DNA of 63,366 nt, filler included, from Neoconidiobolus thromboides FSU 785 (lineage: Eukaryota > Fungi > Entomophthoromycota): NCBI GenBank assembly GCA_025603075.1. It is 5 parts of 5 records of this genome, joined end to end, with 100 filler letters (N's around TTAATTAATTAA, not from the genome) between each part and the next. Parts side by side here need not be neighbours in the genome. Positions count along the whole stretch, not along the records: positions 21,366 to 53,067 come from MU626475.1; 4 more parts are not named here. One strand, 5' to 3'. Under the pieces are notes generated by a model, which worked only from the letters and a program-made list of their open reading frames with translations, did no database searches and was not told where the DNA came from. Shown here in pieces: positions 22,957 to 53,065 of the stretch (positions are counted from its first letter, which is position 1; each line of letters starts with the position of its first letter). A program made the translations under genes and the position numbers.

Positions 22957-23970
22957 ATGAGTTACGTAGGAGAAATAATAGTATTAATTCAAGCTTTAAT
23001 AGGCATAGTGATCAATATTACAATGTTTTATATAATTGTTATTAAGTTAAAGTTAAAAGGCACGGATTTAAAATTAATATTGGTGATTGGGATCCTTGAT
23101 TGTTTATTTTATATAAATTCAGCTGTAAGAGTATCACTGATGATCAATCTCAATCAAGATACAACTTTATTCCCCAATTGGTGGTGCGCGAGTGACACAA
23201 TAATAATAATAATAACATTAGAATCTTCCTTAGAATTAGTAGCTATCTTAGGTTTAATGCGATATTTTGTTATTTGTACCAAATATAAGATATCTGGTCT
23301 AATTTGGTATATCATATCTTCAATATCAATTTTATTATCTTTAGGAACAGCATTATTCAATTTACGTTATAAAGATCCTTATTTTTGGTCGCCATCAAAA
23401 CTAGTATGTTTACCTTTTCCTAAACTAACATCCAGTAATGCAACATTTGCTAAATTTACTTATATTTTATTTATGACAAGATTTCTACTTAGCTTAATTA
23501 TCATTGTATTTTGTTATTTTAATTTGAATTTAGCCTATAATAAACAGTTATCATTAAAAATCAAAAACGAAAGTTCAAGGCACGCACTGTCAGGTAGGTG
23601 GGAGATTTGTGATGAAAACGAGTCCCCACCAAAAGGAAGCTTTTATTCTCAATACAGTGATATAGAAGCTAAAGTATCAAGTATTAAGTTGTGGACTACA
23701 TTAAAGTTAAGTGGTATGATATTAGCTTATATAATATTTATATTACCAAATGCAACAATATCATTATCCTTAGCTTTGAATCCAAGATATATTGATCCAA
23801 GTATAACTACTTTTAGTCATATATTTAATTCATTTACTGGTATTATAAATCCATTATTTGTTTTATTAATTCATGATCCAGCTCGCAAACAAGTAGACAA
23901 AATGTTAGCTAAATTGAATTTAAAAGCACTGCCAAATGCTTCTCAATTTGCTTTTCCATATAGTCCTTGA
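22957..23970 (+). CDS. Class A (rhodopsin-like) 7TM GPCR, intronless; paralogue 1
   Basis: Seven hydrophobic segments with N1.50 (GIVIN), D2.50 (LGILD), C3.25 to R3.50 at the exact spacing (WCASD...GLMRY), ECL2 Cys, TM5 FCY, TM6 ILP and TM7 INP. Confidence 0.85.
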   Translation: MSYVGEIIVLIQALIGIVINITMFYIIVIKLKLKGTDLKLILVIGILDCLFYINSAVRVSLMINLNQDTTLFPNWWCASDTIIIIITLESSLELVAILGLMRYFVICTKYKISGLIWYIISSISILLSLGTALFNLRYKDPYFWSPSKLVCLPFPKLTSSNATFAKFTYILFMTRFLLSLIIIVFCYFNLNLAYNKQLSLKIKNESSRHALSGRWEICDENESPPKGSFYSQYSDIEAKVSSIKLWTTLKLSGMILAYIIFILPNATISLSLALNPRYIDPSITTFSHIFNSFTGIINPLFVLLIHDPARKQVDKMLAKLNLKALPNASQFAFPYSP

Positions 23971-24364
23971 TTTTTTATATTCAATAATAATATTATTAAT
24001 TTTTATTTCATTTAATTAATTTGAAAATTTATATAATAACTTATTAATTGTTTACATATGAAATTTACTTTTTAGCTACAATAACCTATACTAACATGAT
24101 TTTGTATTAATTTTGTATTTTTTTATTAAATTTTAATAATAAAGCTATACAGAAATTTATGAAAACAATAAATTAATCATATAATAAAATAGCAGCTTTG
24201 ATTCAATATTATTTAATTATGAAACTTATACATCAATATCATATATCTCATTATTCCATTGTTTTTCCATATCTTTGTAGAACTATTTTTTTACTCTATT
24301 AAAATTGAATGTTCTATTACCAAAACTTGATAGTTATTATTTAAATTATTAGATAACTCAATTC

Positions 24365-24472
24365 ATATGGGAGATGTATTTTTATGTTTAAGAACTTTAC
24401 TAACAATTTTCCCGTTCAAATACTGCTTAAAAAATGGAAAAGATGATGAAGCCAAAAAAAGTATCCCTATAT
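24365..24472 (+). mobile_element. MITE-like family A copy
   Basis: atatgggagatgt ... gtatccctatat with the consensus interior. Confidence 0.85.
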
Positions 24473-25311
24473 CAACACTTTCAACTTATGTCTTTTGCTC
24501 CTGGGCTGCTCTCTACAAATTAAAGTTCATGCCTTTAAACTTAACCTACTCAATTCCAAAGCTATTCAAGTTTGGCTAAAGTTTTTCCCTTTAATTGCGT
24601 AACTCTCCTATTCCTGTCCTTTTCCAAACCAGTCTTAATCATCTTTGGAATCATTTAATCCTTTATTTTACTTTCTCCAATAAAACACTTGGAAGTCTCT
24701 GATTCCTTCAAGATTTTTTTATTAAGTCATTCAGATTCTGTAAAAAAATATATTATGGTTTTTAAACTATTATTAGTTTTGAGTACCTTTTTATTTTGAG
24801 TGCATTATTGATTTTTGTTATTAATTACACAAATAATTATTATAAGCATCACTATACTTATTATAGATAACCCAACTATAAAAAATACATTGAAAGATTA
24901 TTGATAAATAAGTAACTTTGTCATGAATAAACTTTTTAATTTTAATTAAGTGAAGTGTTATTCTAAGCTGAACTTTCATAAAGGAAACAAAGTGAGAGAG
25001 GGCCAAAGAATGACATTGGAATCATTTAAGTTGAATTAGAATCTTCCACTGAATATAAAATTAATCTACCTACTACGTCACTAATTGTTTAAGCTTCAAA
25101 TTTTCCTTACCACTCACATGATCCCATAACCTTCATTGATTGAGCCAATCATCGGATCGATTTTTTTAGCTCAAAAATTACCACCTTTGATTTTCATTTT
25201 TTATCATTAGTTTTCAAATCTGTTAATACTGAAGGGTAAGAAGCATCGTTTCACTTGTATCAGCAATAGAAAAAGAATTAATACAAAGGACATAGAATAA
25301 AATACATTACT

Positions 25312-28300
25312 ATGGATTTTGACGATACCAATCTAAGTGTTGGTTTAACACAAAGTACCATTTCAAATAGACGAAAAGCTTTATTGAAGACCAATGAGCA
25401 AGAAGAAAGATTATTCACACCACAAATAGAAAATGCTTCTACCAATCCTACCACTAATGGAATAAATACTAGTATCCGAGAGACTAAACCACAAGGGAAT
25501 AGAAGTCCAATTAGTGAAGGAGGTATTCGTAATTTAGTGTATCGTAATCCAACAGAACAATCCAATACTTTTCTCTCAAAGTTCTCTATACCATATACCT
25601 TACAAATTCTATTGTTATTATTACTTGTTTCAAGCTATTATTTTATAAAAATATTGTATATATTTGAGATAAGTGAGGAGAGTGATTCGAAAGTGTGGTT
25701 ATTTTATCAACTGTATGCAGTGTTAAAATGGACTTTGTTAGATTCTATATTATTCGGATTTGCCATGTATTTTAATTTGTTTGAAATTAAAAGAGAATTT
25801 GGAAGTAAAACTCTTGGAGCAATATTAGTTACTATGGCTGCAGTCAATACATCAATTATTTTTAAAATAGGGTGGGTAAGTAATTGATGAGTTGATTTTT
25901 TGTTAAGTAATAATATTAATAATTGAATATTATGATTAGATATTTTCGCCATTCACTTATTTTTTACCTGGTACAAAGACAGAGGCATCATCAGCTAGTA
26001 AGTTTTAAAAAACAAAAATCTTGAATGTTTTATTAATGTATTTTAGTTCCAATAGTTCAAGATAACTTTCAAGGAATTGGATTAAGTAATAATAAGCTGT
26101 TAAGTAGAGAAGAAATTCTTACTGGAAATCAACATCTTTCAGGGAGATATACAGTGAAAATATTACCGGATAGGTAAGAATAAGTTTTTCTATATATGTG
26201 ATCATGAGTTAACATTTTTATTTTTACTATAGTTCCGTTAAATTCAACACTGAGGATCATCATTTCTGTTTAATTAAGGATAAAGATGATAAATATAGAA
26301 AGGATAGTATTTTGATATTTATCAATGGCACTAATCCAAATAAAATGGAAGTGGAATATAGTAAAATTGGAGAAAACAAGAGTAAAATAATAACAATTAA
26401 ATTGAAACAATTTTCAAAAGATAATATTAAAACAAAAGAAAATGGAGATAAGATTGTAGTTGGTCATTATGAATATAGCATCGATAAACCTGGGAAATAT
26501 AGATTTAATAATGTATATGATGGGGAGGGAAATCAGTTTTCTAAATTAGGAAAAGAATTTGAATTAAATATAGCCCCTTGTCCAACTGCAAAGATTAATA
26601 ACATATCACATGATCAACTTAAACCTTCTGATTATTGTTTATCTACAACAAAAGAACCATTGAATACGAATATAGTAGTTTATGGTATTGGACCAATGGA
26701 AGTAACTTATAATTTAAAAGATCAATCAAATAATATGTTTAGTAAAACGATCATTACAGATATTATTGAAAAAGATACATTAAAAGAACAACAATTTAAT
26801 GTAGATTTTAAATTTGATAAACCTGGAAAATATGAATACCAAATTGCCAAGATTAGAGATTACTATGGAAATACTATAGATTATGAGGGATTAAAGAAAT
26901 ACAATAACGAAAAGGAATTAGAAGGATATTTAACAGCTCATTCTAAACCAGATGCTTATTTCAATTTTAAAAATAAGAAACTATATTTATCTCCAATTAA
27001 AAAAGAACAACAGTTATCATTTTCAGCTCAAGGAGAACCCTATGTTAATGTTACTATTGGATTGTGTAAATTAGATAAAGACTGTAACAATATCGAGAAT
27101 TATAAAGTTTATGATATAAAACAATTTAATGATGATTATGATTTTTATGTAAAACATGTGGGATATTATAAAATATTATCAGTTACAGATGCTTATTGTA
27201 AAAATGATATGATTAAATCAAAAATAGTTAAAGTAGAGAAATTACCTAAACCAGAATTAATGATGGATAATCAACCTATTTTATCAACTTGTAATAAAGA
27301 AATTGGTATGGAATTTAATTTAACATTAGCAGGTGATGTTCCATTTGTTTTAGATTATAATATTATAGGAAAACAAGATGATGGAACTAAAGTTAACAAT
27401 AGAAAGAGTATCAAATTAATGAATTTAATTAATTATATTAAAATTATACCAGAACATTCAGGAAATTATGAATATAAATTTACAAAATTAACAAATGAAG
27501 CTTATGGACAAGTAAAACTAACTAATGAGTATCATCAAATAGTAAATGCTCAACCAATAGCTAAATTTATTACTAAAGAAAATAAGGATATTAAATTATG
27601 TTTAAATGAAGATATTCAATCAAATGAATTATTCGTTCAATTAAATGGTAAATTTCCACTGCAATTAGAATATTCAATTATAAATGATGAAAATATTAAA
27701 GAATTTGTAATTAATGATATTCATGATTCAACAATTAAATTAAAAATTGATAAACCAACTATGACTGGCAAACATATAGTACAGTTAACTAATATAATTG
27801 ATGCTGATGGATGTGAAAACAAATTAAATGTACCATCAATAAGTTACGATGTGAGAGATACAAAACCTAAGATTCAGTTTATTTATGAAGATGAAGTTAA
27901 TAATAATAGTAACATATTGTATGGTAAACAAGGTCAAGAATTTAAACTACCAATTTACTTAGAAGGAGAAGCCCCATGGCGATTTATTGTATCAACACCA
28001 AATAATAAATTAAAACCATTTGAGCTTATAGATAATAAAGCTACAATTAATGTGTTTGAAGAAGGAGAATATAAATTAATATCAGTTAAAGATGATTACT
28101 GTAAAGGAGAAGTAGTTAAGGGTGAAGATAAATTTATTATTAAATATTATGATAAACCAATAGTTAAATTAATTATGGGTAGTAATGAACATAATGATAA
28201 TGACTATAATATATTTAAATTAAATCCGGTTTGTCAATATCAATTATCTAATCAAAAGTTAAAATTTTATGGCAATGGACCATTTAAATTAGGTTATAAA

Positions 28301-29538
28301 TTTAAAAATGGAAAATATGAAGATTATTCTGATAAACTTAAAGATAACATATTAAAAGATGAATATTTATTTAATTTAGATACAAATAATGATGGATTAA
28401 ATGAATATCATTTAGATAGAATTGGAGACATGAATTACAATGAATTAATTAAATTAGAAAATGGTATAAAAATTGAGCAATTAGTTTATAAAAATCCAAA
28501 AGCAAGTTTTGTAACAAATAAAATAAAACACATTAAAGCATGTAAATCAAGTACAATTAAAGATTTACAACTTAATTTAATCGGTGAAGCTCCGTTTAAT
28601 ATTGAATTAGAATGGGTAGATCCTAATGGTAATAGTTATCCAGTTGAATTCAAAAATATTCAAACAAAACAATTGAAATTTGAATTGAAATTACCTAATG
28701 ATTCCATAGGTAACTTTAAATTAAATTTAATTAATATACAAGATAAACATCAATGTCAATTTAATAACCCACATATTGAGAGTATTAATATACAAGTATA
28801 TGATATACCTGCTATAAAATATCATTTCCATAAAGATTTATGTGTTGGTGAACAGCTACAATTTTCATTAATAGGAGAAGCACCTTTTCAATTTTATTAT
28901 TCATTAAATGAAAGGAAATTAGGACCAATCAAATTGGAAGATATTGCATTTTCAAGATTAGCAGATAAAGAAGGAAAATTTAAAGTAGAAAAACTATGTC
29001 ATATTGATAACATGTGCTGTAATGAAGAATTGACAGAAATAATAGAAATTCATCAATTACCATCAGCTATTATTCAAAGTCCAAACCAAGTTGAAAAAAT
29101 TCATCAAGGTAACTGAATTTATAAATAAAAGTAGGATTGATATTAATAATATATTCTAATTCACTTAGGTGAAGAAGCTAATATCTCAATTAAATTAGAA
29201 GGTGGTAAGTAAAAAGAAGATTATCTTTTTATTTTTCTTTAAAAGTTTTATTAATGAATTTCAATTTGTTATTTTTAGTTGCTCCCTTTTCAATCCGATA
29301 TACACAACAAGATTTAAAAACTAATCAAGTAAAATCTGCTTCAACAATTCGAAATATTAATCAAAAAAAGTATGATTTAAAAACAAAAGAAGAAGGTAAA
29401 TTAAATTTATAATTTATAACCAAACTTGAAATACAAAGAGTAATTTATTAATTATTTTATTATTATCTTATTTTAGGTATCTTTGAAATTGTTTATGTTG
29501 AAGATAGGTATTGTAGTTATCCACCAATTGGGAAATAA
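25312..29538 (+). CDS. POM152: Nuclear pore membrane protein Pom152-like, multi-exon
   Basis: Disordered N-terminus, transmembrane helices, then tandem beta-rich Ig-like units with recurring GxxPf/wxlxY and D..C motifs (LAGDVPFVLDY, LNGKFPLQLEY, LEGEAPWRF, LIGEAPFNI, LIGEAPFQFYY). Ends VEDRYCSYPPIGK* at 29538. Confidence 0.85.
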
Positions 29539-29778
29539 ACTAGACTGAATGAAGAAAAAAGTAAAGAAGATATAAACAAGGGGAAATGGTTTGTTTTTTA
29601 TAATAAAATTGATTAGCTTAAAAAATAAATAATAATATATCTTTTAAGTTCTTTTTTAGTTCAAATGATAAGTTGATTTGAGTTTTATAATTTATTTTGA
29701 CTATGAAGCGTCTTTTATTAGACTAAGTATTTACACTAAAGTTTTAACAAAATTGTAAATTGATAAAGTTTAATATAA

Positions 29779-29919
29779 ATTTGAGGATATTCTATTTTGT
29801 TTAAGAAATTTACTACCAATTTTCTACTCGTATTTTCACTCATACTTTCACTCATACTTTCACTCATATATCGCTGAAAAATGAGGAAAAGTGATAGTAC
29901 CAAAAAAAATCATTTATAT
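29779..29919 (+). mobile_element. MITE-like family A copy with internal tandem expansion
   Basis: Consensus flanks (tttaagaaatttactacc..., gaaaagtgatagtaccaaaaaaa) around three copies of tttcactcata. Confidence 0.7.
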
Positions 29920-30168
29920 ATTAACACATTAATATATTAATAAAAAACTTATCGAAATAATCAATAAAAACTTAGTTTTGTCTATTACTATATATATCTA
30001 CTTTATAATTTGTGAAAAAAACTATTAATTTTGTAAGCTACTTTTAATTATACTCATAATACAACTAATATTTATAGTTCAATCCATAAAATTAGAATTG
30101 CTTATTAAATGAAAATCATTTCCAATAGTTAATTTAGTTGCTCTATACTAACTTAAACAAACAACAAG

Positions 30169-30271
30169 TAGGGGTGTTTTTTTGGCTTCATTATTTTTTC
30201 CATTTTTTAAGCGCTAGTTGAGTGGAAAAATTGTTAGTAAAATTCTTAAATATAAAAATACATCCCCATAT
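30169..30271 (-). mobile_element. MITE-like family A copy
   Basis: taggggtgt ... acatccccatat, reverse-complement consensus. Confidence 0.88.
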
Positions 30272-30418
30272 GGTTTATTTGATTTATAGCATAATTACTA
30301 AGCTAAAAAAAGAATGTACAATTAATATAAAGTATTTCATTCAATAACATCAATTCAATTCTAACATTGCATATAAATCAAAAACAAAGTGATCTTGATC
30401 ATTAGAAAAATAACTAAT

Positions 30419-30524
30419 ATATGGCGATGTTCTTTTGTGTTTAAGAATTTTACTAACAATATTTCCACTCAACTAGCGCTTAAAAAATGGAAAAGTAATG
30501 AAATCAAAAAAAACATCCCCATAT
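30419..30524 (+). mobile_element. MITE-like family A copy
   Basis: atatggcgatgt ... acatccccatat. Confidence 0.9.
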
Positions 30525-31002
30525 GGTAATTTAATTTTATAATAGGGTATACAAAGGGGATTCTCTTTATTTATTTTAAAATAGAGATCAAATAGAGCTT
30601 GAATCGCATCAAGGAGTTGCTTCAACTTATGATAAATCAGCTGCTAATCTAAATTCGGAAGTTGAGATAAAAATGCATCGTCATTAGCATGAAACGAGCT
30701 GTGTCCTCATGATCCATCTAATATATTAGAACCATAATTAACCTTAAGCTTAGATCGATTAAAATAACGTAAAGTTTGATTTTATGTCAAATGCAACTCG
30801 TTTTTATAACTAACATATAATATTAATGACCAGAAAAGCAAATAGAGTTAACTATTAAAGTGCTACTATTTTACATCTTGTAAAAATAAATAATAATTGT
30901 TCATCTATAACGTGTCTCGATTTTACTTTATTAATCAAGTTTTAAATTCTCGAAATAGCGCTAAACCCCTGAAATCTTATAAAATTAGTTGGACAAGTTA
31001 TT

Positions 31003-31104
31003 ATATGGAGATGTTTTTTTAGCTTCGCTTTTTCCATTTTTTAAGCACTATTTGAGTAGAAAGGTTGTTAATAAAATCCTTAAACACAAAACACATCACC
31101 ATAT
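31003..31104 (-). mobile_element. MITE-like family A copy
   Basis: atatggagatgt ... acatcaccatat. Confidence 0.88.
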
Positions 31105-31445
31105 GTAGTAATGGTCGATTAGTGAATCTTTTATAATTTTTGGTGCTATTAACGATGATCTTCATGTTTGTTACAGGAAAGTTTGTTGACTGTATAGCTT
31201 TAAATTTTATAAACAATTTTCAAATTGGTTTCAATAGTAGGATATCAAATAGTTACTATGATTTTTAAATGCTATATAGTTGTATTAAGGTGGATTTTAC
31301 TTATTTTAAGTTTATATATAAATTAAAAAGTTAGATTAAAATCAATGTATATGTATTAAATAAATCCTTTAGATAAAAGTTATAAATGATAGAAGCGCAA
31401 AAAGTAAAAAAATGGAGCTATAGTTAATATTGAATTTATTTACAT

Positions 31446-32180
31446 CTAATTTAGGGAAAGTATATTAAAATAAAGGTTTAGTATCGAATATGAGATATTC
31501 AGATAATAACTATCGATATAGTCAAGTTTTATCAAGATGTGAGCTTGACCAAAGTAATAAAGTAAATCATATACATACTTTGAATAAAGATCCTTTTTTT
31601 GATTGTTCTTAGGTTTAAAATATTTCTCAGTCACAAATAGTATGATGGTTAAAAGCATAAAGTTGTATACTGGATTCATGAAATTTTGCTTAAAAAATTC
31701 AATATTAATTTCATTCAAAATAAGATTGATATTACTTATATCTAGTGCAAAAAATAAATCTACTAAAATAAGATCTTCCTTGTCAAAATTATATAAAAAT
31801 TGAAAGCTATTTTCAAAACTGATATTAGAAATTGGGTTATAACCTTTAGTAATAAGTTGAGTTAAGTCTAAGCTGTTGTGTATTAGCTCGACTTCTTCAT
31901 TTAATAAATTTTTAAAATCGGTATTGATTGTCCTATTGAGGCCAGAGTTTGAATTTTCATAATAGTATGTTGAAGTATTACTTGAACCTGTAGAAGGACT
32001 TAAGGAAGGACTTAAGGAAGGACTCAAAGTATGACTAAAAGAAGGTGTTAAGGTAGAATTTGACAAAGGGCTTGTAGGAACAAGCTGTATACAATCTTTT
32101 AATAAAGAATATAATGAAGAGTCAGGAATCAAAGCATTCTTTATATTGTTGAACAAAGGTTTGGGCAAAATATTGGTCAT
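31446..32180 (-). CDS. Hypothetical protein or fragment; possibly the linker and middle-homology region of a fungal transcription factor
   Basis: 244-aa ATG ORF with a Ser-rich linker (SPSL repeats), then LVDLFFALD...ILNEINIEFF...FMLLTII, loosely like Fungal_trans regions. No intact Zn2Cys6 domain found upstream. Confidence 0.35.
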   Translation of the reverse strand: MTNILPKPLFNNIKNALIPDSSLYSLLKDCIQLVPTSPLSNSTLTPSFSHTLSPSLSPSLSPSTGSSNTSTYYYENSNSGLNRTINTDFKNLLNEEVELIHNSLDLTQLITKGYNPISNISFENSFQFLYNFDKEDLILVDLFFALDISNINLILNEINIEFFKQNFMNPVYNFMLLTIILFVTEKYFKPKNNQKKDLYSKYVYDLLYYFGQAHILIKLDYIDSYYLNISYSILNLYFNILSLN

Positions 32181-34653
32181 CTCAAATTTACGAACTAAAT
32201 AAAAAGATTACTTTTCACTGGTTATATAGTGCTATCTACCTCAAATTTTTTATTAGTTAATAAAAATAGATAAATAATGAATGACTTTCAGAAGCCATCG
32301 AACTAAGTTCAATAACAATGGTGTTATATAAATTCACTTGCTACTGTCGTTTACTGCTCCTTTCTAGAACAGGATATGCTATAAATTGACCCATTTGTAA
32401 ACTAATCCGATCGTTCATTCTTAGAATACCAACTTTGGCAATAACAAGTTCCTTATTTAGAGCTTATTTTAGACCAAATAAGAACCATTTTTAATTGTTC
32501 AAAATAGTCTTTTTATGATTTCTAAATCCCATCATTTTTGTTGCTTAAAATTGTTCATATTTAAGACTTTATTGCCTTAAATATTCGATAACATTAGGTC
32601 TCTTTTACTAACTATTTGATTAAATAAAGCTCATAATATCACTCTCATACTTTAACTTTGAATTACAACGATAGTATTTGGAATTTCTTTGTTTTTATAA
32701 CCAATTTAACCTTAATAAAGTCCATAGTTTTAATTTTGCTTATTGTATTCTGAGATTTTAATATTGAATTAACTCTGAGATTGAGCCTTTATATTAAGAT
32801 CAATTCTGTTATTTCAGTGTTCTACACTAATCACTTCACTTGTTATTTGATATATATAGGACTGAAAGTTTACATAGAAATAACAAATCAGTCTAGAACG
32901 AAATAACGTAATTTATATATTTTCTATTTAATAAACTAAGAATGTTATCAATAAAGTAACATTAACCTTAATTTTGGTTTCATTTGAGAATATGCTCACC
33001 ATCTCGAATTACTAAATATAAAAGTTCAATGCCTATTTAGATAGATATATCAATTACCTTTTAAAAACATTGAAAATAGAGCTTTTCTATAATAGATACT
33101 TTTGAAGTTTAAACTATCAGTATAAACTATTAATAAAAAAGCTAAAATAGTAATAAAAAAAGAGCTTATACAGTATCTTTCAATAATCACACATCAAATA
33201 ACTTGTAAATCTTATATGAAAGCTCTACAGTTTAGCCCAATCGATAAAAAATATCTACTTTCTGATTATATCTATCTCCTCATTATATAGAAAGCCATCT
33301 GGAGAATAAAAGTGAAAGAAATCCCACTTTGGCTATCGGCTTCTTCCAAAGATAATAGGTTGTTGAACTCAATTTCTATTTTACCAGGTGGTACTCTTTG
33401 AGGATTTTATTTCCTAGCCCCACTGACTTTATCATTTAAACTTTTATTTTAACTAATAAAACACTTGAAGTTTCAGTTTTCAAAAGAAGAAAAGAGCTGT
33501 AAATCGGTATCAAAACTGTTGTCTTCAGATATATAGACTATTTTTCTTAAAATTTGCTCCAAAAGTTATATTTATATAATATAATTTTAATTACTGCCTG
33601 TATAAAGATATCAAACAGTATATCAAAAATAATAATCTTTTCTATGGAACATTTTTTGGTATAAAGTATTTGAAAAAAAGGCCGTTTTAGTAAAGCTTTA
33701 TTAACTAATACAAAAAATTTAGTAATCGATAAAATTAAATAACTTTTGTTTTGAATTATGAACCTTTAAGTAAGATAAATAAATACGTTAGCCTTGCAGT
33801 ATTTATATAAAAATGTCTGTACACATTGCTGACGAATTTCTTAGAAAAAATCCTTAGCTTCTCTATTTCTTATACAAGAGTCATCATTGTATCTTTGAAG
33901 AATATTATTAGTTTTATACTAAAAGCTTTCAAAAACACCACAATAGCAATTATGGGCTCAATAAATATTCGTTTCTTATTCTGTTTAAGTTTGTTTTTAT
34001 ATATATAATTTTACTTCGAAGGCTACAGGGCTTTGTGTTTTGTTAGTTAATAAAACGATCAGGAAAGAGACATTATAGTAGTAGAAAATCAAAGAATCGA
34101 TGAAGCTTACAGAAGTTTATGAAAGAAGTCATTATGGGTCGGTTAAAGCCAGTCATAAAGGAAAAAACCAGGATCATATAGTGTCGGTCTTGTTGCGGGC
34201 GAGCTTAGAAATTGAGTATCTGAGTTTGGGAAAGGTAAGGTTCAATATCCAGGGAACATTTTTGTATATTTGGATTTAAAATTTTGAAAGTAAACTTAGT
34301 TTTAGATATAATTGATCTATTGAAGCTACTAGAATATTAATGCCTCTTCACTTCATCGCATCTAACTTTATAATCTTTGAAATGACCAACATTTTTTTTT
34401 AAGCTAGCTTATTAAAATAACATTAAAGTGAAGTCTCTTATTCTATATATATTTTGATTTATTACTTTGTTTAGCTTTCCTCATCCTACATCAATAAACT
34501 TTAAAGATGCAAGAAATCATGACCAATAGCTTGATATAAAAATTAAAAGTTGATAGGAAGTATTTTGACCCTAATTCATTGCTCTTTAAAAAAAGAAATT
34601 ATAAAGAAAAAATCAACAAAATTGTATCAAATAGACATAATTTACTAAAAAAA

Positions 34654-35667
34654 TCAAGAGCTATATGGGAAAGCAGATTGTAGACCATTTGTTTTTGATT
34701 TGAAGCTAAATTTTGACAACACTTTATCTACTTGCTTACGTGTTGGATCATGAATTAATAAAACAAATAGTGCGTTTATAATACCGCTAAATGAATTAAA
34801 TATATGGCTAAATGTTGTTATATCCGGATCAATATTTCTCGGATTTAAAGCTAGTGATAATGACACCGTTGCATTTGGTAAAATACATACTATATAAGCT
34901 AAAATCATACAGGTTAGCTTTAATGTTGTCCAGAACTTGATTCTTGCTATTTTAGCATCTGTGTTATTATCTTCAAAGTAAAGACTCTCTTTTGTTGGTG
35001 AATCAGCCCCATCAGAAATTACTAATCCTTCTGTCAAAGCATGCTTTGAATCCCCATTTCTGATTTTTAACGTTAAATATTTGTTATAAACTAAATTTAA
35101 ATTAAAGTAGCAGAACACAATGATAATCAAACTGATTAGAAATCTGGCCATAAATAAAATGTATGTGAATTTAACATAAGTTCCATTATTCGATGCTAGT
35201 TTAGGGAAAGGCAAGCATATGAGCTTAGATGGAGACCAAAAATAAGGATCTTTATAATATAAATTAAATAGCGTTGTCCCTAAAGATAATGAAATTGATA
35301 ATGAAGACATAATATACCAAAATAAGTTGGATATCTTATACTTCCTACAAATAGTAAAATATCTCATTAAGCCTAAAATAGCTACCAGTTCTAAGGAAGA
35401 TTCCATTGTTATTATTGTTATACTTGTGTCACTTGCACACCACCAATTCGGAAATAAAGTTGTATCTTGATTAAAGCTCGTCATTAGTGATATCCTTACA
35501 ACCGAATTTATATAAAACAAACAATCAAGGATCCCAATCAGCAATATTAGTTTTAAATCTGTGCCTTTTAAACTTAATTTGATGACAATTATGTAAAACA
35601 TTAAACAATTTATCATTATGCCTATTAAAGCTTGGATTAGCAAAACTATTTCTCCTGCGTATCCCAT
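34654..35667 (-). CDS. Class A (rhodopsin-like) 7TM GPCR, intronless; paralogue 2
   Basis: Same length (337 aa) as and collinear with 22957-23970; WCASD...GLMRY, FCY, ILP retained; TM7 reads INA rather than INP. Confidence 0.85.
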   Translation of the reverse strand: MGYAGEIVLLIQALIGIMINCLMFYIIVIKLSLKGTDLKLILLIGILDCLFYINSVVRISLMTSFNQDTTLFPNWWCASDTSITIITMESSLELVAILGLMRYFTICRKYKISNLFWYIMSSLSISLSLGTTLFNLYYKDPYFWSPSKLICLPFPKLASNNGTYVKFTYILFMARFLISLIIIVFCYFNLNLVYNKYLTLKIRNGDSKHALTEGLVISDGADSPTKESLYFEDNNTDAKIARIKFWTTLKLTCMILAYIVCILPNATVSLSLALNPRNIDPDITTFSHIFNSFSGIINALFVLLIHDPTRKQVDKVLSKFSFKSKTNGLQSAFPYSS

Positions 35668-36486
35668 CTTTTATATTAAATTATTAAATTGAAAAAAAAT
35701 AAAAAATAAAAGTCTTTAATATAGGTATTTATCTAATATTAGTATTACCATTTTAGCTAGTAACCATGTTTTATTCATTACAATAATAGCACAACGAAAT
35801 TAAGGTAAAGGAAATAGTAATCAAAAATCTATAAATAGCAAATGAGATTAAATAAAAGAGAATAAAAATATATTGAAGCTTGTTTCTAACTAGAACTAAG
35901 TAATTATAATAAAATTTATAACCCAAGTTTTAAAAATTTTCATTTTTTTTATTTGGCAAAGCATATTATCATTACTTACTAACAAATATATTACTACTTC
36001 TAACAAAGTAATTTTAATATTATATTGATTTTTAAGAGGGTTGCGTTATATTTTATAAAATAATTATTTTTTTTATAAAAGGACCTATTGGGTATACAAC
36101 CTTAATAAGCATTGTCAAGAATTTGATTCAGGAAATATATTGATCTGAAAGAGATCTCATAAATTTCTATAAACTTTATTGTTTGCTAATAACATTGTGT
36201 ACTATATCTCCAAAACTATTAGATTTTAACTAATAATTGTACACAATCTATAATGTTATCTATAAAATAATCTTCCTTTTTGGGCAAATATGTTACCCTA
36301 AAGATGTAGAATTGCTACACATAAACCTTCATGTAAGAAATGTCTCATTTTTGAACATAAAAAACACCTCCTGTCGCAATCGATATCCTTTTTACTACTT
36401 TTGATCATAAAAAGGAGCTTGCTTTAGAAATAACTCTGTAGTTTTTCAATGATCAATGATCAATAATCAAAATAGAACACTAACTA

Positions 36487-36794
36487 GAACAGAATCCGTT
36501 CAGTTGAGGATAGACTTATTAAATTTAAGCATTTTTTCATTTGGTTAAGCACCATGAAATTATTATAAAATTGTTAGCATTTAAATTTCATATTTTTTAT
36601 AACTTGACCAAGTTCGAAAACATTTGCTTATTTTAAAACTGCCTATCTTTTAACTTTTAAATATTTCATATTAGCAATTAAGAGAGAAAATGAAATTTAA
36701 ATGCTAACAATTTTGTAATGATTTCATGGTGCTTAACCAAATGGAAAAATGCTTAAATCCAACAAGTCTGCCCTTAACTAAACGGATTCCGTTC
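36487..36794. repeat. Long fold-back element: ~105-bp inverted arms (36487-36591, 36690-36794) around a ~98-bp spacer
   Basis: Left arm gaacagaatccgttcagttgagg...catttggttaagcaccatgaaat...aaaattgttagcatttaaatttcat is the near-perfect reverse complement of the right arm. Confidence 0.9.
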
Positions 36795-37458
36795 CGATAA
36801 TTATTTGCATAAAACAGAATGGTCTTGTATTTATGCATAAGAACATTTTTGAAAAGGCAATAAATTAAATAAAACTTGTTATTAGAGTTAGTATACCCAA
36901 GGTCTAATTTTCCGGTTTTAGTTTCTTGAAAAATTATAAATTAAGTAAAAATACTATTAAGATATTTGCTCTTTTGCTTAAACAAACAATATGGTAACGC
37001 CTTTTTACTGTAGGATTTAACTGTAAACTTTTTGAGTTTTGCTAAATATAAAGATGAACAAGAAAGTTTAAAAAAGTCCAATTTTCATATGAGTTTTGTA
37101 ATTGATACTATAATTACAATGATATTTTTAGTAACCTCTATTTTCATTAATCCAAAAACTAGATTATAAATCTATACATGATAGGAAAATTATTTTAAGA
37201 ATTAACTTTATTCTTACAAGGTAACTACTTAAAGATCAAAACTCTAACACTACCATGAAGAAACCCAATATTAGGTTAATTATTATATATAGTTATGTCC
37301 CTTACATAACTGATAGTTTTATTAATTATATGATAAACCCAGATTTATTGTAATTCTTAATTTATAAAACTATGCAACTATATAAAAATCATAGCGATAT
37401 ATAATAGCTGATGTAACAATTGTTTTTTCTGATTAGAAACTACTTTTTTAAAAATCGA

Positions 37459-37564
37459 ATATGGGGCTGTTTTTTTTAGTTTCATTATTTTTCCATTTTT
37501 TAAGCGCTATTTATGTGGAAAAATTGTCAGTAAAATTCTTAAATACAAAAATACATTCCCAAAT
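37459..37564 (-). mobile_element. MITE-like family A copy (near-identical to 19763-19868)
   Basis: Its reverse complement differs from the 19763 copy at only about 3 terminal positions. Confidence 0.9.
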
Positions 37565-38177
37565 ACTCTTATAGTTTAAAAAGCTTATTTTTAATTTTAG
37601 TTATTTAAAACATTTCCTTTTAAGAATATAAAAAAAATTATATTGAAACATCCATCTTTATAATCATTAGAGTTCAATTATAGACACTTGCATAAATTAA
37701 TATCGATACTTAGTATTAATTTGCTAAATAATTGATTATTTAAAATCTCAACATTATTTGTATTAGTCTTTGAGCTCAAATATACTTTTATAAATTCTTG
37801 TTAAAACTTACAAGTTTTTTAAACTTGCTGAGCTGCCTCAAAAAAATATTTGAAATCTTTGAAAATAATCATTTGTCAAATTTTTAATAAAAACCAGACA
37901 CTTTAACTTACATAAAACATCTATTACCAACCTTTAATAACTATGTAGAAAAACCAATATGATTATAAAGTTATAGGGGTATTTCGAAGGTTCTTGAAGC
38001 TTTTTTGAATAAGGGTAAATCTAAGAATATAAAACTACAATAGATAAAAATATTTGCTGCAATTTTTTTTAGACAAAATAGACAATTGAAATATCAACAA
38101 TTAGATAAAACTTACCATTGTAACTAATATATTCGTTAGCTTTTCAAACCTGAAACTACAAAAACTTCTGAAAAAAC

Positions 38178-38281
38178 CATAAGATTGTCTTTTTTAGTAC
38201 CACCACTTTTTCCATTTTTTAAGCCCTATTGAGAGAGGGAAATGTTAGTAAATTTCTTAAATAAAAAAGACATCCTCATAT
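38178..38281 (-). mobile_element. MITE-like family A copy (diverged)
   Basis: tttttccattttttaagccctattgagagagggaaatgttagtaaatttcttaaat...acatcctcatat. Confidence 0.75.
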
Positions 38282-38615
38282 AATAAAACCTTAAGTTTAA
38301 AAAGGATACTTTTAGTGTGTTTACTAAATGTATAGTTAATAACTTGTAAAATTAATTCATAAATAATAGACGATAAATAAACATTTTGATGAAATAATTA
38401 ATTTTAGGCATAAACGTTTGAATTTGAGGCGTCAGCCTTTCAAGAAATAAGACATAATCATAATATGTTTGAACTTTTACTGCATTAAGTAGTTAAATAA
38501 AGTCTTTAAGTCGATCTCAAAAGCAATGCATATAGTATTTAAAAACTATATAAAATTACAATATCATAAATTCAAATCTAAATTTTTAATTCATTTGATC
38601 CCTGTTTATTATAAA

Positions 38616-39638
38616 ATGGTCGATGCTGGAGAAATTTTTATGTTGATACAAGATTTGATAGGTATTATAGTTAACTGTGCAATGTTTTATATAATTGTTG
38701 TAAAACTGAAGTTAAAGGGCATAGATTTGAAATTGATACTTGTAATTGGAATTCTTGATTGTTTGTTTTTTATAAACTCGGTACTAAGGATATCTTTAAT
38801 AACTTGGTTTAACCAAAATTTGAAATTGCTTCCAACTTGGTGGTGCGGTTGGGATTCTACATTGACATTAATAACATTGGAAACTTCATTTGAATTAGTC
38901 GCTATATTAAGTTTGATGAGATATTTTACGATTTGTACTAAATATAAGCCTCCAATCTTATTCTGGGTCTTGATCTCACTCTTGTCTTTTTCAATTTCAG
39001 TGATAGCACCATCATATGCGTTTAAGTATAATGATCCCTTTTCATGGTCAGCCTCAAAATTAATTTGTTTACCGTTGCCTAAACCATCAGCACATAATTT
39101 AGATTATGCTAAATTTTTGTACTCTTTCTTTATGGCTAGATTTATATTCGATATATTGGTTATTGTATTTTGTTACTTGAATATAACTTTAAAATATAAT
39201 AAGGCTATCTCAATTAATTTCTATGATACCACGACAGTCTATCAGCAACGAAATCTTCAAATTCCCTACAATGATACCATACACGATGTCCAATCAATTC
39301 AGAGCTCCGACTTTAAATGTGACGAACATACTAATAAACAAATTAGAAAAATTCGTACTTCCACTACCATAAAACTATTGACTATAGTTATTGCCTATAT
39401 AGTATGCATATTACCCAACTCAATACTTTCATTAAAGATAGCATTAAAACCTGAACCAATCAACTCGAATTTAGTGACTTGCACTCATATATTGATTTCG
39501 TTTGTTGGGATTATCAATCCATTATTTGTACTTTTGGTACATGAACCATCTCGTCGTCAGCTGATTAGATTAACACCTTTCATATTTCCAAATAACAACA
39601 AAAAAATACATAAATTTCCTTACTTTAGGCACCCTTAA
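38616..39638 (+). CDS. Class A (rhodopsin-like) 7TM GPCR, intronless; paralogue 3 (more diverged)
   Basis: ATG at 38616 (MVDAGEIF aligns with MSYVGEII and MGYAGEIV); LGILDCL, WCGWD...SLMRY, FCY, CILP, GIINPLF. Confidence 0.85.
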   Translation: MVDAGEIFMLIQDLIGIIVNCAMFYIIVVKLKLKGIDLKLILVIGILDCLFFINSVLRISLITWFNQNLKLLPTWWCGWDSTLTLITLETSFELVAILSLMRYFTICTKYKPPILFWVLISLLSFSISVIAPSYAFKYNDPFSWSASKLICLPLPKPSAHNLDYAKFLYSFFMARFIFDILVIVFCYLNITLKYNKAISINFYDTTTVYQQRNLQIPYNDTIHDVQSIQSSDFKCDEHTNKQIRKIRTSTTIKLLTIVIAYIVCILPNSILSLKIALKPEPINSNLVTCTHILISFVGIINPLFVLLVHEPSRRQLIRLTPFIFPNNNKKIHKFPYFRHP

Positions 39639-39803
39639 GTTTCATATAGCATTAACGTGGTCATTGATTGTCTTGTTTTAATTATTATTGTTTATCATAA
39701 TAAAATTATTTTCATATTATCCAAATATGAACTTTAAACTAAAAACATAATTGTTTTTAATTTTTATTATAATACCTAAAATTGAAAAGAATGAATCTAA
39801 AAA

Positions 39804-39875
39804 TAGCATCTGAAGGTTTCGATCCTTCGACCTCGGGGTTATGAGCCCCGCGCGCTTCCTCTGCGCCAAGATGCT
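39804..39875 (-). tRNA. Initiator tRNA-Met (CAT)
   Basis: AGCATCTTGGCGCAGAGGAAGCGCGCGGGGCTCATAACCCCGAGGTCGAAGGATCGAAACCTTCAGATGCTA: A1-U72 pair, GGG/CCC anticodon stem, ATCGAAA T-loop, all eukaryotic initiator hallmarks. Confidence 0.96.
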
Positions 39876-40194
39876 TTCTATAACCATAAGAAAATTTTTA
39901 TATAAAAATTTTTTAAAAGTGTCCTCAGTTTATTAAAATAAAATGAAATGAATTTTTAATAGCGAACATTTAATACTTTACATCTAAAAAGACTCTTATT
40001 ATAATTTAATCTGCTATTGTATTGTTTCCATACTATTTTGGTTTTTCTAACCATTTTTGTGACTTTTTACTGCGGAAATTAAAAAAAGTTAGAGTAGCAA
40101 GCCAATTAAATCTGCCTAATTTATAATATTAAAGCAATAATTTAAACCCTTATCTTTTTCTTTCATTAAGTCTAGTAGTAAATAAAATTAAAAA

Positions 40195-45398: not shown

Positions 45399-46960
45399 TT
45401 ATTTATTAAATAAAATTTTTTCAAGATTAGTGCGATTTAAATCTAAAGAGGAGATTGAAGATAAATTTGAGATGGAAGTAGCAGAAAGTTCAGATAATCC
45501 GAACGAATGAGCTTTTGGAGGTGCATTTAACAATTCTTTTTGTTTTTGTTTTTCGAAATCCTGGTTCATATTTTTAATTGACATTTTGCGCAATGTTTTT
45601 AAGCTAGGTACCTTATCCTCTTCATAATGTTTTAATATTGATGGTTGCGTCAAGTTTGTATGTGAGATTAAGTCTTGGTTTAATTGGTTGGCCGATTTAG
45701 ATAAATAGTATTCAGAAATGGTCTTAAGGATCGTTGTACCTTGACTTTTTAGGCCTATAATTTCTTTTAAGTTCTGGGTAAAGTTTGCATTTTGATGAAA
45801 GTTATTATAATATTTGGGATTCAGTTTCATACATATATAAATTACTAAGATCATATAAATTAAACTTATTGTTCCATTATCTGCCATGACTCCAATTGCT
45901 CCTTTTTTGCTATTAAAGTTTATTAACTAAAGTCAATATATAATTAAGTTAATTACTTACTAATAAGTTAAATCATGGATTATATCTATGCAATTTATAT
46001 CAGTATCAATGAATTACCAAATTATAATATTATTCCAACTTACCACTACTAACTAATATATTAACAAAGATAGTAACGTAGTTTGGTAGCTCTAGTAGCT
46101 AATATATAATGTTATTCTAATTCGATTTAATTAATATTAAGATCCTTACTAATACTAAGGCACATAGTGTTGACTTTGAGAGCACTAGCGTAAGATCGGT
46201 TTCAAAGGTGGAATGAAATAAGAAAATAATATAAATAACAAAGATCGAGCTTAGTATAGTACTAAGATCCAAATAAAATAATGGAGAAGTAAAATGCAAG
46301 TCGTGGGGACAATGATCTATTTTGGGCACCAAAATGAATTTAAGTAAGGTAGTAATAATCGAGATAATAGGAAGCTGACTGATAGCCAGAAAAACTTTCG
46401 GTAAAAATGAAGGTTTTGCTGGTTGATATTTGATTTTACAAAAGGGAAAAATTAATCTTCTTTGTTTTCGATTCGCTACTATCTCTTTCACCTTCATATC
46501 ATCCTTTTCTAATATATGTACCATCATCTTTAGTACTTGTAGCATCAATACTCCATTATACGTTTTATTTAAATTTTTTAAATAAATGTCTAAGAAAGGA
46601 AAGCGGTAACTCACGATTGAGAATATAATCATTACCGGTACACTAGTTAATATTTGCAAAATCGGTACTTGCAATTCCTAATAAAACATAAAACATAAAA
46701 TATTGATTGTAATAAAAAAGATGAAGCCAACCTTAGTATAATATTTTATGTGTATATAAATGTGATAGATCGCAAAACCTGCAGTAACAATTCCAATACC
46801 TCCGATTAAACATAGTATACTATAACTTGCTAAAACAGGATAAAAAATTAGCTACCTTGATAAGCTTTAGCTTTTAATATTTACTTATTATCTCTGCCAA
46901 ATGCTGTTCGCTACCAAACGTGCCTTCTTTTAAATGATTATAATAACAGCTTTCTGACAT
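45399..46960 (-). CDS. TMEM184 / organic solute transporter OST-alpha family membrane protein, multi-exon
   Basis: AIYHIYIHIKYYTK|ELQVPILQILTSVPVMIIFSIVSYRF...TY matches the family's H.Y..P..Q..IiRIL.mVP pattern; charged cytosolic tail. First splice junction is uncertain. Confidence 0.72.
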
Positions 46961-51857: not shown

Positions 51858-51960
51858 ATATGGGGCTGTTTTTTTGGTTTCATTATTTTTCCGTTTCTTA
51901 AGCGCTATTTGAGTGGAAAATTTGTTAGTAAAATCCTTAAACACAAATACATCCTCATAT
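51858..51960 (-). mobile_element. MITE-like family A copy
   Basis: atatggggctgt ... acatcctcatat. Confidence 0.9.
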
Positions 51961-52244
51961 TGTAGAAGAATTATAGTTGTTATTTTAATAAAGTTGGTAC
52001 TTACAAAATTTGAGGCTTTTCATAAAAAGTTGTAGCCGATTACAATAAATAATGATTACTATGCTACAGTATTATGATAAAATAAAGTACTACAAACAAA
52101 CCTCACAAGGCTCGTTTATTGAATATAAAAAATAAACTATCAAATATAATGAAAATTTTAGCTTGTTTTGTAAACAATGTTTTAGTAATTAGTCGTGAAT
52201 AATAAAAATTAAAAATATATATAATATTTGTAGTCGAAATCTAA

Positions 52245-52316
52245 AGCATCTTGGCGCAGAGGAAGCGCGCGGGGCTCATAACCCCGAGGTCGAAGGATCG
52301 AAACCTTCAGATGCTA
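52245..52316 (+). tRNA. Initiator tRNA-Met (CAT), identical to 39804-39875
   Basis: Same 72-nt sequence, followed by a T-run (Pol III terminator-like). Confidence 0.96.
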
Positions 52317-52537
52317 TTTTCTTTTACTCATTAAACAAAACTTCTTTTAGATAAATTTCAATATTTTAATGACTATTAGACAGACCATACTTATCCTTTT
52401 TAAAAGAGGTATTTATTTATTAGTTATTATAATTTACAAACCATTGAGTGTTTAATATAAAGTTCTTAAAGCTATTTTGATTATTTTTTAAATAAATATA
52501 AGCTTTGTTTATAATATAATTGGATTATTAAATATAA

Positions 52538-52633
52538 AAATGTATTTCTTTGTTTAAGAATTTTGCTGATAGCCTTTTCATTGAAATAATGCTTAAAAAC
52601 GGAAAAAGTGATGAAATCAAAACACCTTCATAC
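52538..52633 (+). mobile_element. MITE-like family A copy (degenerate, head-to-tail with the next copy)
   Basis: tgtatttctttgtttaagaattttgctgatagcc...gcttaaaaacggaaaaagtgatgaaatcaaaacacc. Confidence 0.7.
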
Positions 52634-52734
52634 GTGGGTTATTTTTATATTTGAGAATTTCACTAATAATTTTTCCACTCAAATAGTGCTTAAAAGATGG
52701 AAAAAATGATGAAGCCAAAAAAACATCCCCATAT
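52634..52734 (+). mobile_element. MITE-like family A copy
   Basis: ...ttttccactcaaatagtgcttaaaagatggaaaaaatgatgaagccaaaaaaacatccccatat. Confidence 0.85.
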
Positions 52735-52751
52735 CTTATTCATCAAAGATC

Positions 52752-52958: not shown

Positions 52959-53065
52959 ATATGGGTATGTGTTTTTGTATTTAAGAATTTTACTAGCAAT
53001 TTTTCCACTCAAATAGCGCTTAAAAGGTGGAAAAAGTAATGAAGCCAAAAAAAACATCCCCATAT
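52959..53065 (+). mobile_element. MITE-like family A copy (abuts the gap)
   Basis: atatgggtatgt ... acatccccatat. Confidence 0.9.

Follow-up and report, generated by a model that had tools for sequence, protein, structure and literature searches.

The window analyzed here, a 63,366-nucleotide stretch of DNA from Neoconidiobolus thromboides FSU 785, contains three intronless genes, G1 to G3, which very probably encode functional class A receptor paralogs that belong to an entomophthoralean-specific clade, arose by local duplication and are maintained by purifying selection. The three genes are real and were rightly read in an earlier note on this DNA; they define no new kind of system and belong to a receptor expansion that is already catalogued. 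Their positions and those of their signature motifs, as recovered by ORF and motif searches, are as follows:

22957-23970, plus strand: G1 (P0002), class A-type receptor gene without introns, ORF of 337 aa
23257-23265 and 23848-23862, plus strand: MRY and NPLFV motifs of G1
34654-35667, minus strand: G2 (P0001), class A-type receptor gene without introns, ORF of 337 aa
35359-35367 and 34762-34776, minus strand: MRY and NALFV motifs of G2
38616-39638, plus strand: G3 (P0003), class A-type receptor gene without introns, ORF of 340 aa
38916-38924 and 39516-39530, plus strand: MRY and NPLFV motifs of G3

Class A identity and residue architecture

Scans with the Pfam 7tm_1 profile (PF00001), the check proposed in the earlier note, gave scores above the gathering cut-off of 30.5 bits for both G2 (35.7 bits) and G3 (35.6 bits). 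G1 alone recovered no Pfam match at E<=1, and is a member of the 7tm_1 family as judged by homology, its protein being 75% identical to that of G2. Among 55 family sequences 7tm_1 was matched by 32, and other Pfam GPCR families by none. A 24-sequence family profile searched against the PDB matched 524 sequences, the best 60 of which are all class A receptors, with somatostatin receptor 5 (2.2e-18) and rhodopsin (4.5e-18) at the top. An AlphaFold model of G2, computed from the 55-sequence alignment (pLDDT 87.2, pTM 0.86; a three-sequence alignment gave a pLDDT of 38), displays a bundle of seven TM helices followed by helix 8, together with an ECL2 hairpin that carries a Cys for pairing with C3.25, while the N-terminus is nearly missing, with TM1 preceded by about 4 residues in the model. 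Foldseek searches with this model recovered at least 500 matches at E<=0.001, and the best 50 are all class A structures with TM-scores of 0.59-0.81, a range due to the choice of normalizing length; identity between animal receptors and G2 in structural alignments is 12-17%. Neighbors in the ESM Atlas are likewise 7tm_1 clusters. The Pfam, PDB profile and predicted-fold results thus agree on the class A identity claimed at the outset; the PDB and Foldseek matches listed are class A only.

The residue numbering of G2 follows from aligning it by HMMER with rhodopsin and with the beta2-adrenergic receptor, and gives the following assignments:

TM1-TM3 of G2: N20=1.50, D48=2.50, C77=3.25, D80=3.28, E89=3.37, S91=3.39, E93=3.41
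xRY of G2: M101-R102-Y103=3.49-3.51, with C77 exactly 25 residues ahead of R102
TM4-TM6 of G2: W117=4.50, C151 in ECL2, Y187=5.58, P264=6.50
TM7 of G2: H288=7.39, S292=7.43, N298-A/P-L-F-V302=7.49-7.53 (A/P being variation among the paralogs)

These residues are the same in all three proteins, with the sole exception of position 7.50, which is Ala in G2 (NALFV) and Pro in G1 and G3 (NPLFV). Each of the motifs claimed for the three proteins was recovered at the position given in the earlier note. The reference set of N1.50, D2.50, R3.50, W4.50, P6.50, N7.49 and C3.25 with the ECL2 Cys is invariant in the three and frequent among the 55, and the two cysteines would be expected to form a disulfide. 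ICL3 is, as had been stated, the most variable region (5% identity over alignment columns 201-240). The proposed sodium pocket appears to be partial only: of the residues that together mark class A sodium-site receptors (D2.50, S3.39, W6.48, N7.45, S7.46 and N7.49), the three proteins keep D2.50, S3.39 and N7.49, with Ile at 6.48, S/T/V at 7.45 and Gly at 7.46. Three features went unmentioned in the earlier note, namely Ser or Asp at 5.50, the absence of W6.48 and an invariant Arg at 5.46.

Activation switches and signaling

An acidic residue at 3.49, P5.50, W6.48 and Y7.53 are typical of class A receptors, though not strictly defining. These canonical microswitches are absent from G1-G3, where the corresponding residues are Met (3.49), Ser/Asp (5.50), Ile (6.48) and Val (7.53), and this holds across the 55-sequence family, in which 3.49 is hydrophobic, 7.53 is V/A/I, W6.48 is absent and P5.50 is rare. 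On the other hand, the family conserves R3.50 (54/55), Y5.58 (52/55), P6.50 (54/55), N7.49 (46/55) and D2.50 (49/51). MRY and NPLFV/NALFV, on which the notion of a rewired switch was based, were both recovered in G1-G3, and the switch is shared by the family in the form just given. NPxxx, with no Tyr at 7.53, had already been noted in fungal rhodopsin-family receptors in 2012 (Krishnan et al., PMC3251606).

A further peculiarity concerns charged residues on TM3 and TM5. The 12-protein clade described below has 11 sequenced members (G1-G3 and eight relatives), in which an acidic 3.41 is always accompanied by Arg5.46, and among the 55 sequences 25 have both an acidic 3.41 and a basic 5.46, 26 have neither and 4 are mixed (Fisher 3e-11 in a raw table). 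A tree-aware test, for which supported branches supplied just 3 independent pairs, showed no significant association, and the apparent pairing is thus offered as a lead. Position 3.41 usually lies at the TM3-4-5 interface, outside the ligand pocket. Given this location and the co-occurrence, the charges at 3.41 and 5.46 may be structural. Hence, although D3.28, E3.37, E3.41 and H7.39 are all kept in G1-G3 as the earlier note had it, its reading of them as an acidic pocket is weakened.

These features might be taken to imply that the entomophthoralean clade is a class A lineage of different activation design that constitutes the main chemosensory repertoire for insect-host cues, a tentative reading that we consider unlikely. 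It would view R3.50 as unrestrained (hydrophobic 3.49, basic 6.30), with W6.48, P5.50 and Y7.53 gone and His7.57 conserved, and would posit a putative buried link from Arg5.46 to Glu3.37/Glu3.41 joining TM3 and TM5. Less probable still is the possibility that these are 7TM proteins of the class A fold without G-protein signaling, which signal through other partners, serve as constitutive scaffolds or fill roles related to the membrane. The family-wide loss of D3.49, W6.48, P5.50 and Y7.53 could reflect such lost signaling, and a literature search found no coupling data for the fungal 7tm_1 expansion. However, the strongly kept R3.50, Y5.58, P6.50, N7.49 and D2.50 are chiefly relevant to activation of the G-protein type, and Y7.53 is also absent from chytrid rhodopsin-family receptors (PMC3251606).

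If G1-G3 are functional class A receptors, as preferred here, their ligand site would lie inside the helix bundle or the loops, and the ligand would therefore be a small molecule or short peptide, with the clade-conserved D3.28, N/D6.51 and H/N7.39 as candidate contacts. They would couple to G proteins, the signal passing to the heterotrimer via the conserved R3.50, Y5.58, Y6.44, P6.50 and N7.49. As 3.49 is hydrophobic and 6.30 basic, there would be no ionic lock on R3.50; further, the lack of the W6.48 toggle, the P5.50 kink and Y7.53 suggests an activation path unlike that of animal receptors in detail, from which a high basal activity may follow. His7.57 and the Arg5.46/Glu3.37/Glu3.41 cluster are candidate stand-ins for the lost switches. 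A literature search did not find Y6.44, H7.57 or an acidic 3.41 with a basic 5.46 described for fungal receptors.

Gene integrity and origin of the family

All three genes were found as complete single-exon paralogous ORFs of 337-340 aa at the place claimed. Their fungal source is likewise borne out, with POM152 and Cse1 as neighbors and the contig lying within the N. thromboides FSU 785 assembly GCA_025603075.1, which also contains the paralog KAI9292293.1. The gene region contains many dispersed repeats. The G3 ORF is open from 38526, but its start by homology is the second ATG at 38616: nucleotide comparison shows similarity to G1 and G2 beginning at 38610, and the stored protein P0003, with 340 aa, fits this start. 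Protein identity of G3 to G2 is 49-51%. G1 and G2 resemble each other at the nucleotide level over the ORF and for only about 7 nt beyond it on either side.

Pairwise dN/dS values are 0.17 for G1 versus G2 and 0.20-0.30 for the comparisons with G3, at a dS of 0.8-2.0, and variants in a related isolate comprise 16 synonymous and 9 replacement changes. In a read check that took in G2 and G3, a 1021-nt contig from X5, a run guessed to be RNA, was collinear with 34673-35669 in G2 with 0 mismatches and 0 gaps, and confined to the G2 ORF; a 186-nt contig from the same run maps to 39390-39575 in G3. The low dN/dS values, together with the collinear contig in this probable RNA run, speak for functional genes. 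That they are instead decaying duplicates, whether pseudogenes or annotation noise within an AT-rich genome full of repeats, is very improbable: the abundance of dispersed repeats and the want of a Pfam match for G1 would fit it, but the ORFs are full-length and intact despite a GC content of 26%, at which 1-kb ORFs are unlikely to arise by chance. The dN/dS values, the end of between-copy similarity at the ORF limits, the confident G2 model over all helices and the probable transcript contig also speak against decay.

All relatives used here come from one exhaustive search, which covered 1.84 billion representatives and recovered 53 relatives at E<=0.001. The source was looked up for 30 of the 52 non-window relatives, and those named are all entomophthoralean (N. 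thromboides, Massospora cicadina, Entomophthora muscae and Conidiobolus coronatus), so the family is present in at least four genera of this group. Word-based protein searching recovered no more than G1-G3 themselves, and the 24-sequence profile added almost nothing to them. In the tree G1-G3 form one clade (SH-aLRT 98), nested in a 12-protein clade (support 100) that otherwise comprises eight N. thromboides paralogs and one Massospora protein. These results accord with the lineage-expanded family posited earlier, and the three genes would have been born by local duplication inside the N. thromboides lineage, with their sequences thereafter probably maintained by purifying selection.

The description of these receptors as animal-type should not be taken to mean an animal derivation, there being no animal protein among the 53 relatives. 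A recent horizontal gain of the genes from an animal host, namely an insect, could be envisaged given that the family is best known in animals and the fungus is an insect pathogen. It is nevertheless highly improbable in view of the absence of animal relatives, the purely entomophthoralean named sources, the low identity to animal receptors noted above and the spread of the family over several entomophthoralean genera. Moreover, gene GC (28-30%) and GC3 (20-29%) are in line with the host contig, and receptors of the rhodopsin family date back to the opisthokont ancestor (PMC3251606, PMC12716839). A role as animal-type, retinal-binding light sensors, already denied in the earlier note, is the least credible of all despite the rhodopsins among the top PDB matches, as 7.43 is Ser in all three proteins, Lys is outside the seven commonest 7.43 residues (which account for 45 of the 55 sequences), and the rhodopsin score is no better than those of peptide receptors.

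Known receptors and biological significance

Animal class A receptors, among which rhodopsin and the somatostatin, PrRP and prostanoid receptors match best, share with G1-G3 the 7TM bundle with helix 8, the ECL2 hairpin, N1.50, D2.50, the C3.25-ECL2 pair, R3.50-Y3.51, W4.50, Y5.58, P6.50 and N7.49. G1-G3 differ from them in lacking an acidic 3.49, P5.50, W6.48 and Y7.53, in their basic 6.30 and in their nearly absent N-terminus, and fall within no animal subfamily. Ste2, Ste3, Gpr1/Git3, PTH11 and the Bac_rhodopsin opsins are, like G1-G3, fungal seven-helix membrane proteins, but none of these Pfam families matches G1-G3, and the TM7 Lys required in Bac_rhodopsin-type opsins is missing. The cAMP-receptor family, recognized by NxY in TM3 in place of xRY (PMC3251606), was also considered and rejected, there being no Dicty_CAR match in the 55 sequences and R3.50 in all but one.

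Close counterparts are the class 15 (7tm_1) receptors of early-diverging fungi, which make up 26 of the 33 GPCRs in the N. thromboides genome (PMC12842992, J Fungi 2025) and are of the same Pfam family, with the same concentration in Entomophthoromycotina (PMC3251606, PMC12842992). Chytrid and blastocladian members have been described as carrying ERY, whereas the clade of G1-G3 has M/I/L/V-R-Y. A 7tm_1 expansion in Conidiobolus was reported in 2025, with host recognition put forward as a hypothesis without experiments (PMC12387763); this expansion, in C. coronatus, involves a related genus, the same receptor type and the same host-recognition hypothesis. Its distant family members include KXN68449, KXN66231, KXN72880, KXN74013 and KXN68445, but no C. 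coronatus relative exceeds about 25% identity to G1-G3, whose subclade is restricted to N. thromboides and Massospora. The earlier guess that the genes belong to a known Pfam 7tm_1 expansion devoid of functional data was correct (PMC12842992, PMC12387763).

The expansion of the family, together with the published hypotheses, suggests a role in sensing environmental or host cues, and G1-G3 might conceivably sense host amines, peptides or lipids. Most recognizable GPCRs of these insect-pathogenic fungi are of the rhodopsin family (26/33 in N. thromboides, PMC12842992), and the value of G1-G3 lies in their being compact, intronless and well-modelled candidates for receptor experiments. A deorphanized member would reveal the working of non-animal class A receptors without the DRY acid, the CWxP Trp and the NPxxY Tyr, and could account for host finding in a group employed for biological control.

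The three genes and their class A affiliation

The piece of the window from MU626475.1 (31,702 bp) carries three receptor genes, here called G1, G2 and G3:

22957-23970, + strand: G1, single-exon ORF, 337 aa
34654-35667, - strand: G2, single-exon ORF, 337 aa
38526-39638, + strand: G3, single-exon ORF, start at the second ATG (38616), 340 aa

The start of G3 was placed at 38616 because its DNA begins to resemble that of the other two genes at 38610. G1 and G2 are 75% identical, while G3 shares about 50% identity with either; the nucleotide similarity of G1 and G2 covers the ORF and about 7 nt on either side, and then ends. Nei-Gojobori dN/dS values are 0.17 (G1-G2), 0.30 (G1-G3) and 0.20 (G2-G3), with dS of 0.8-2.0, and in contigs of a related isolate's run (X4) the differences listed for G2 and G3 include at least 16 synonymous and at least 9 replacement changes. 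In X5, a probable RNA run that holds just 22% of the region's words and was compared over a stretch excluding G1, a 1021-nt contig lies on 34673-35669 (the G2 ORF) with 0 mismatches and 0 gaps, and a 186-nt contig falls within G3. These contigs fit transcription of an intronless gene but fall short of proof, as the type of the run is a guess. The longer contig also has 24 letters past 35669 that do not match the genome, which could stem from adaptor sequence, from faulty assembly or from a spliced 5' UTR exon further upstream.

The class A identity proposed in the earlier note is upheld by several concurring lines of evidence. G2 and G3 match Pfam 7tm_1 with 35.7 and 35.6 bits against a gathering score of 30.5. 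G1 lacks a 7tm_1 match even at E<=1, despite its identity to the passing G2, and Pfam-based counts are therefore lower bounds. Within the family of 55 aligned sequences, 32 match 7tm_1 and none matches any other GPCR family in Pfam. A 24-member family profile recovered 524 distinct PDB sequences, with 60 of the 60 among the matches listed being class A, and the best matches being somatostatin receptor 5 (2.2e-18) and rhodopsin (4.5e-18). AlphaFold gave a pLDDT of 38 with a 3-sequence alignment, and 87.2 (pTM 0.86) with 55 sequences; the model comprises seven helices, helix 8 and an ECL2 hairpin, with a disordered ICL3. Among the Foldseek matches listed, 50 of 50 are class A receptors (TM-score 0.59-0.81 by normalising length), and ESM Atlas neighbours are consistent with this assignment.

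Conserved residues and a possible mode of action

The numbering register was taken from HMMER alignments of the family profile with bovine rhodopsin and the beta2-adrenergic receptor.

Residues of G2 at generic positions, and motif counts in the 55 family sequences
Position; G2; family
1.50; N20; -
2.50; D48; -
3.25; C77; -
3.28; D80; -
3.37; E89; -
3.39; S91; -
3.41; E93; -
3.49-3.51; M101-R102-Y103; 3.49 M/I/L/V 47/55, Glu 4/55, Asp 0/55; 3.50 Arg 54/55
4.50; W117; -
ECL2; C151; -
5.50; -; Pro 6/55 only
5.58; Y187; Tyr 52/55
6.44; -; Tyr 52/55
6.48; -; I/F/L, Trp 2/55
6.50; P264; Pro 54/55
7.39; H288; -
7.43; S292; -
7.49-7.53; N298 to V302; 7.49 Asn 46/55; 7.53 V/A/I, Tyr 1/55
7.57; -; His 46/55

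The tabulated residues N20 to V302 are identical in all three proteins bar P/A at 7.50, giving NALFV in G2 and NPLFV in G1 and G3, and conservation is lowest in ICL3. The residues listed in the earlier note thus proved correct in every testable detail; its sodium pocket has D2.50 and S3.39 as described, but the set is incomplete (6.48 Ile, 7.46 Gly). Beyond that list, the three proteins share Ser/Asp at 5.50, Ile at 6.48, Lys/Arg at 6.30 and an invariant Arg at 5.46. Their C-termini have an invariant F-P-Y tripeptide (G2 residues 333-335, window ~34663-34671) in an otherwise variable tail; this tripeptide might serve in sorting or in binding a partner.

The counts show that the 'rewired' switch noticed in these three proteins is a trait of the whole family. 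Fungal rhodopsin-family receptors were described by Krishnan et al. as bearing 'ERY and NPXXX' (PMC3251606), whereas the present family differs in its hydrophobic 3.49.

As only about 4 residues precede TM1, ligand recognition would have to sit in the bundle and loops. D3.28, N/D6.51, H/N7.39, R5.46 and an acidic 3.41 are constant in all 11 sequenced members of a 12-protein clade including G1-G3, and S3.39 in 10 of the 11. G-protein-type activation is suggested by the conserved R3.50, Y5.58, P6.50, N7.49 and D2.50, and basal activity may be high because neither 3.49 nor 6.30 is acidic to hold R3.50. That the three are instead non-coupling 7TM proteins is rather unlikely. The tests run on these proteins or their family contradict four other readings, namely pseudogenes, a recent transfer from an animal, opsins and cAMP-type receptors.

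An acidic 3.41 and a basic 5.46 (residues 93 and 175; alignment A3) occur together in 25 sequences, with neither in 26 and a mixed state in 4 (Fisher 3e-11); a tree-aware test of this association, underpowered with just 3 independent contrasts on supported branches, was not significant. The two residues could be buried and ion-paired across TM3 and TM5, taking the place of the P5.50 kink. Glu3.37 and His5.46 are known to interact in bovine rhodopsin, and a putative Arg5.46-Glu3.37/3.41 link joining TM3 to TM5 is therefore a reasonable lead.

Genomic neighbourhood and repeats

The piece (21366-53067; GC 23-34%) also encodes POM152, a G-patch protein, an AMP-binding enzyme, an Ost-alpha-like protein and Cse1. 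Its features include:

25312-25887, + strand: weak TRP-like membrane ORF, between G1 and G2
26312-29116, + strand: POM152 nucleoporin, 934-aa ORF, between G1 and G2
31446-32180, - strand: 244-aa ORF with no Pfam match, between G1 and G2
39804-39875, - strand: tRNA-Met (CAT), just downstream of G3
46117-46674, - strand: ORF matching Pfam Solute_trans_a (Ost-alpha), E 9.5e-15
52245-52316, + strand: tRNA-Met (CAT)
24374-24472, 30171-30271, 30427-30525, 31005-31105, 37464-37564, 51862-51962, 52540-52735, 52967-53065: dispersed ~100-nt element

Given POM152 and the two ORFs between G1 and G2, the paralogues are dispersed rather than strictly tandem. The Solute_trans_a ORF is probably a single exon of a larger gene; as this family is the fungal GPCR 'Class 13' (PMC12842992), the contig holds a second GPCR-like family.

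The ~100-nt element occurs at least 9 times in the 32-kb piece, in both orientations; its summed contig depth in the genome run (X1) is ~1.9 million against a baseline of ~450, which suggests a MITE- or SINE-like repeat with thousands of copies. G2 and G3, which point away from each other, are separated by a spacer with two inverted arms of 120 nt each (36487-36606 and 36675-36794; 86% complementary, 68 nt between) that look like a hairpin-type (MITE-like) insertion. Both tRNA-Met genes lie within 105-nt inverted duplicates (39800-39904 and 52216-52320; 90% complementary).

Relatives and place among fungal receptors

An exhaustive search of 1.84 billion representatives recovered 53 relatives at E <= 0.001; those named come only from N. 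thromboides (an entomophthoralean insect pathogen), Massospora cicadina, Entomophthora muscae and Conidiobolus coronatus, with no animal proteins among them. In the maximum-likelihood tree G1-G3 form a clade (SH-aLRT 98) nested in the 12-protein clade (support 100), whose other members are a single protein from Massospora and eight further paralogues from N. thromboides. The paralogue P0004 (KAI9292293.1, on MU626458.1 of GCA_025603075.1), named by NCBI 'family A G protein-coupled receptor-like protein', is likewise intronless. Three clade paralogues have consecutive accessions (KAI9295062-64) on one 97-kb contig that also holds a fourth, KAI9295057, and these neighbouring accessions indicate that the clade grows by local duplication.

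The 7tm_1 receptors constitute the fungal 'Class 15', with 984 found, concentrated in Entomophthoromycotina (PMC12842992); its supplement places 26 of 33 GPCRs of Conidiobolus thromboides FSU 785, and 22 of 24 of C. coronatus, in this class. A C. coronatus isolate has 125 seven-transmembrane receptors, for which host recognition was proposed and functional tools were said to be lacking (PMC12387763), and the family's origin has been dated before the fungal-animal split (PMC12716839, PMC3251606). The three genes are thus real and correctly read, and their kind is already catalogued, in the same genome. At most three items are new: the table of motifs for the whole family, the joint occurrence of acidic 3.41 and basic 5.46, and the escape of G1 from Pfam.

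The interpretation in the earlier note is largely supported, and its functional part is hypothetical. The Arg5.46-Glu link, if real, weakens its idea of acids lining the ligand pocket. Catalogues resting on Pfam matches probably undercount this receptor family.
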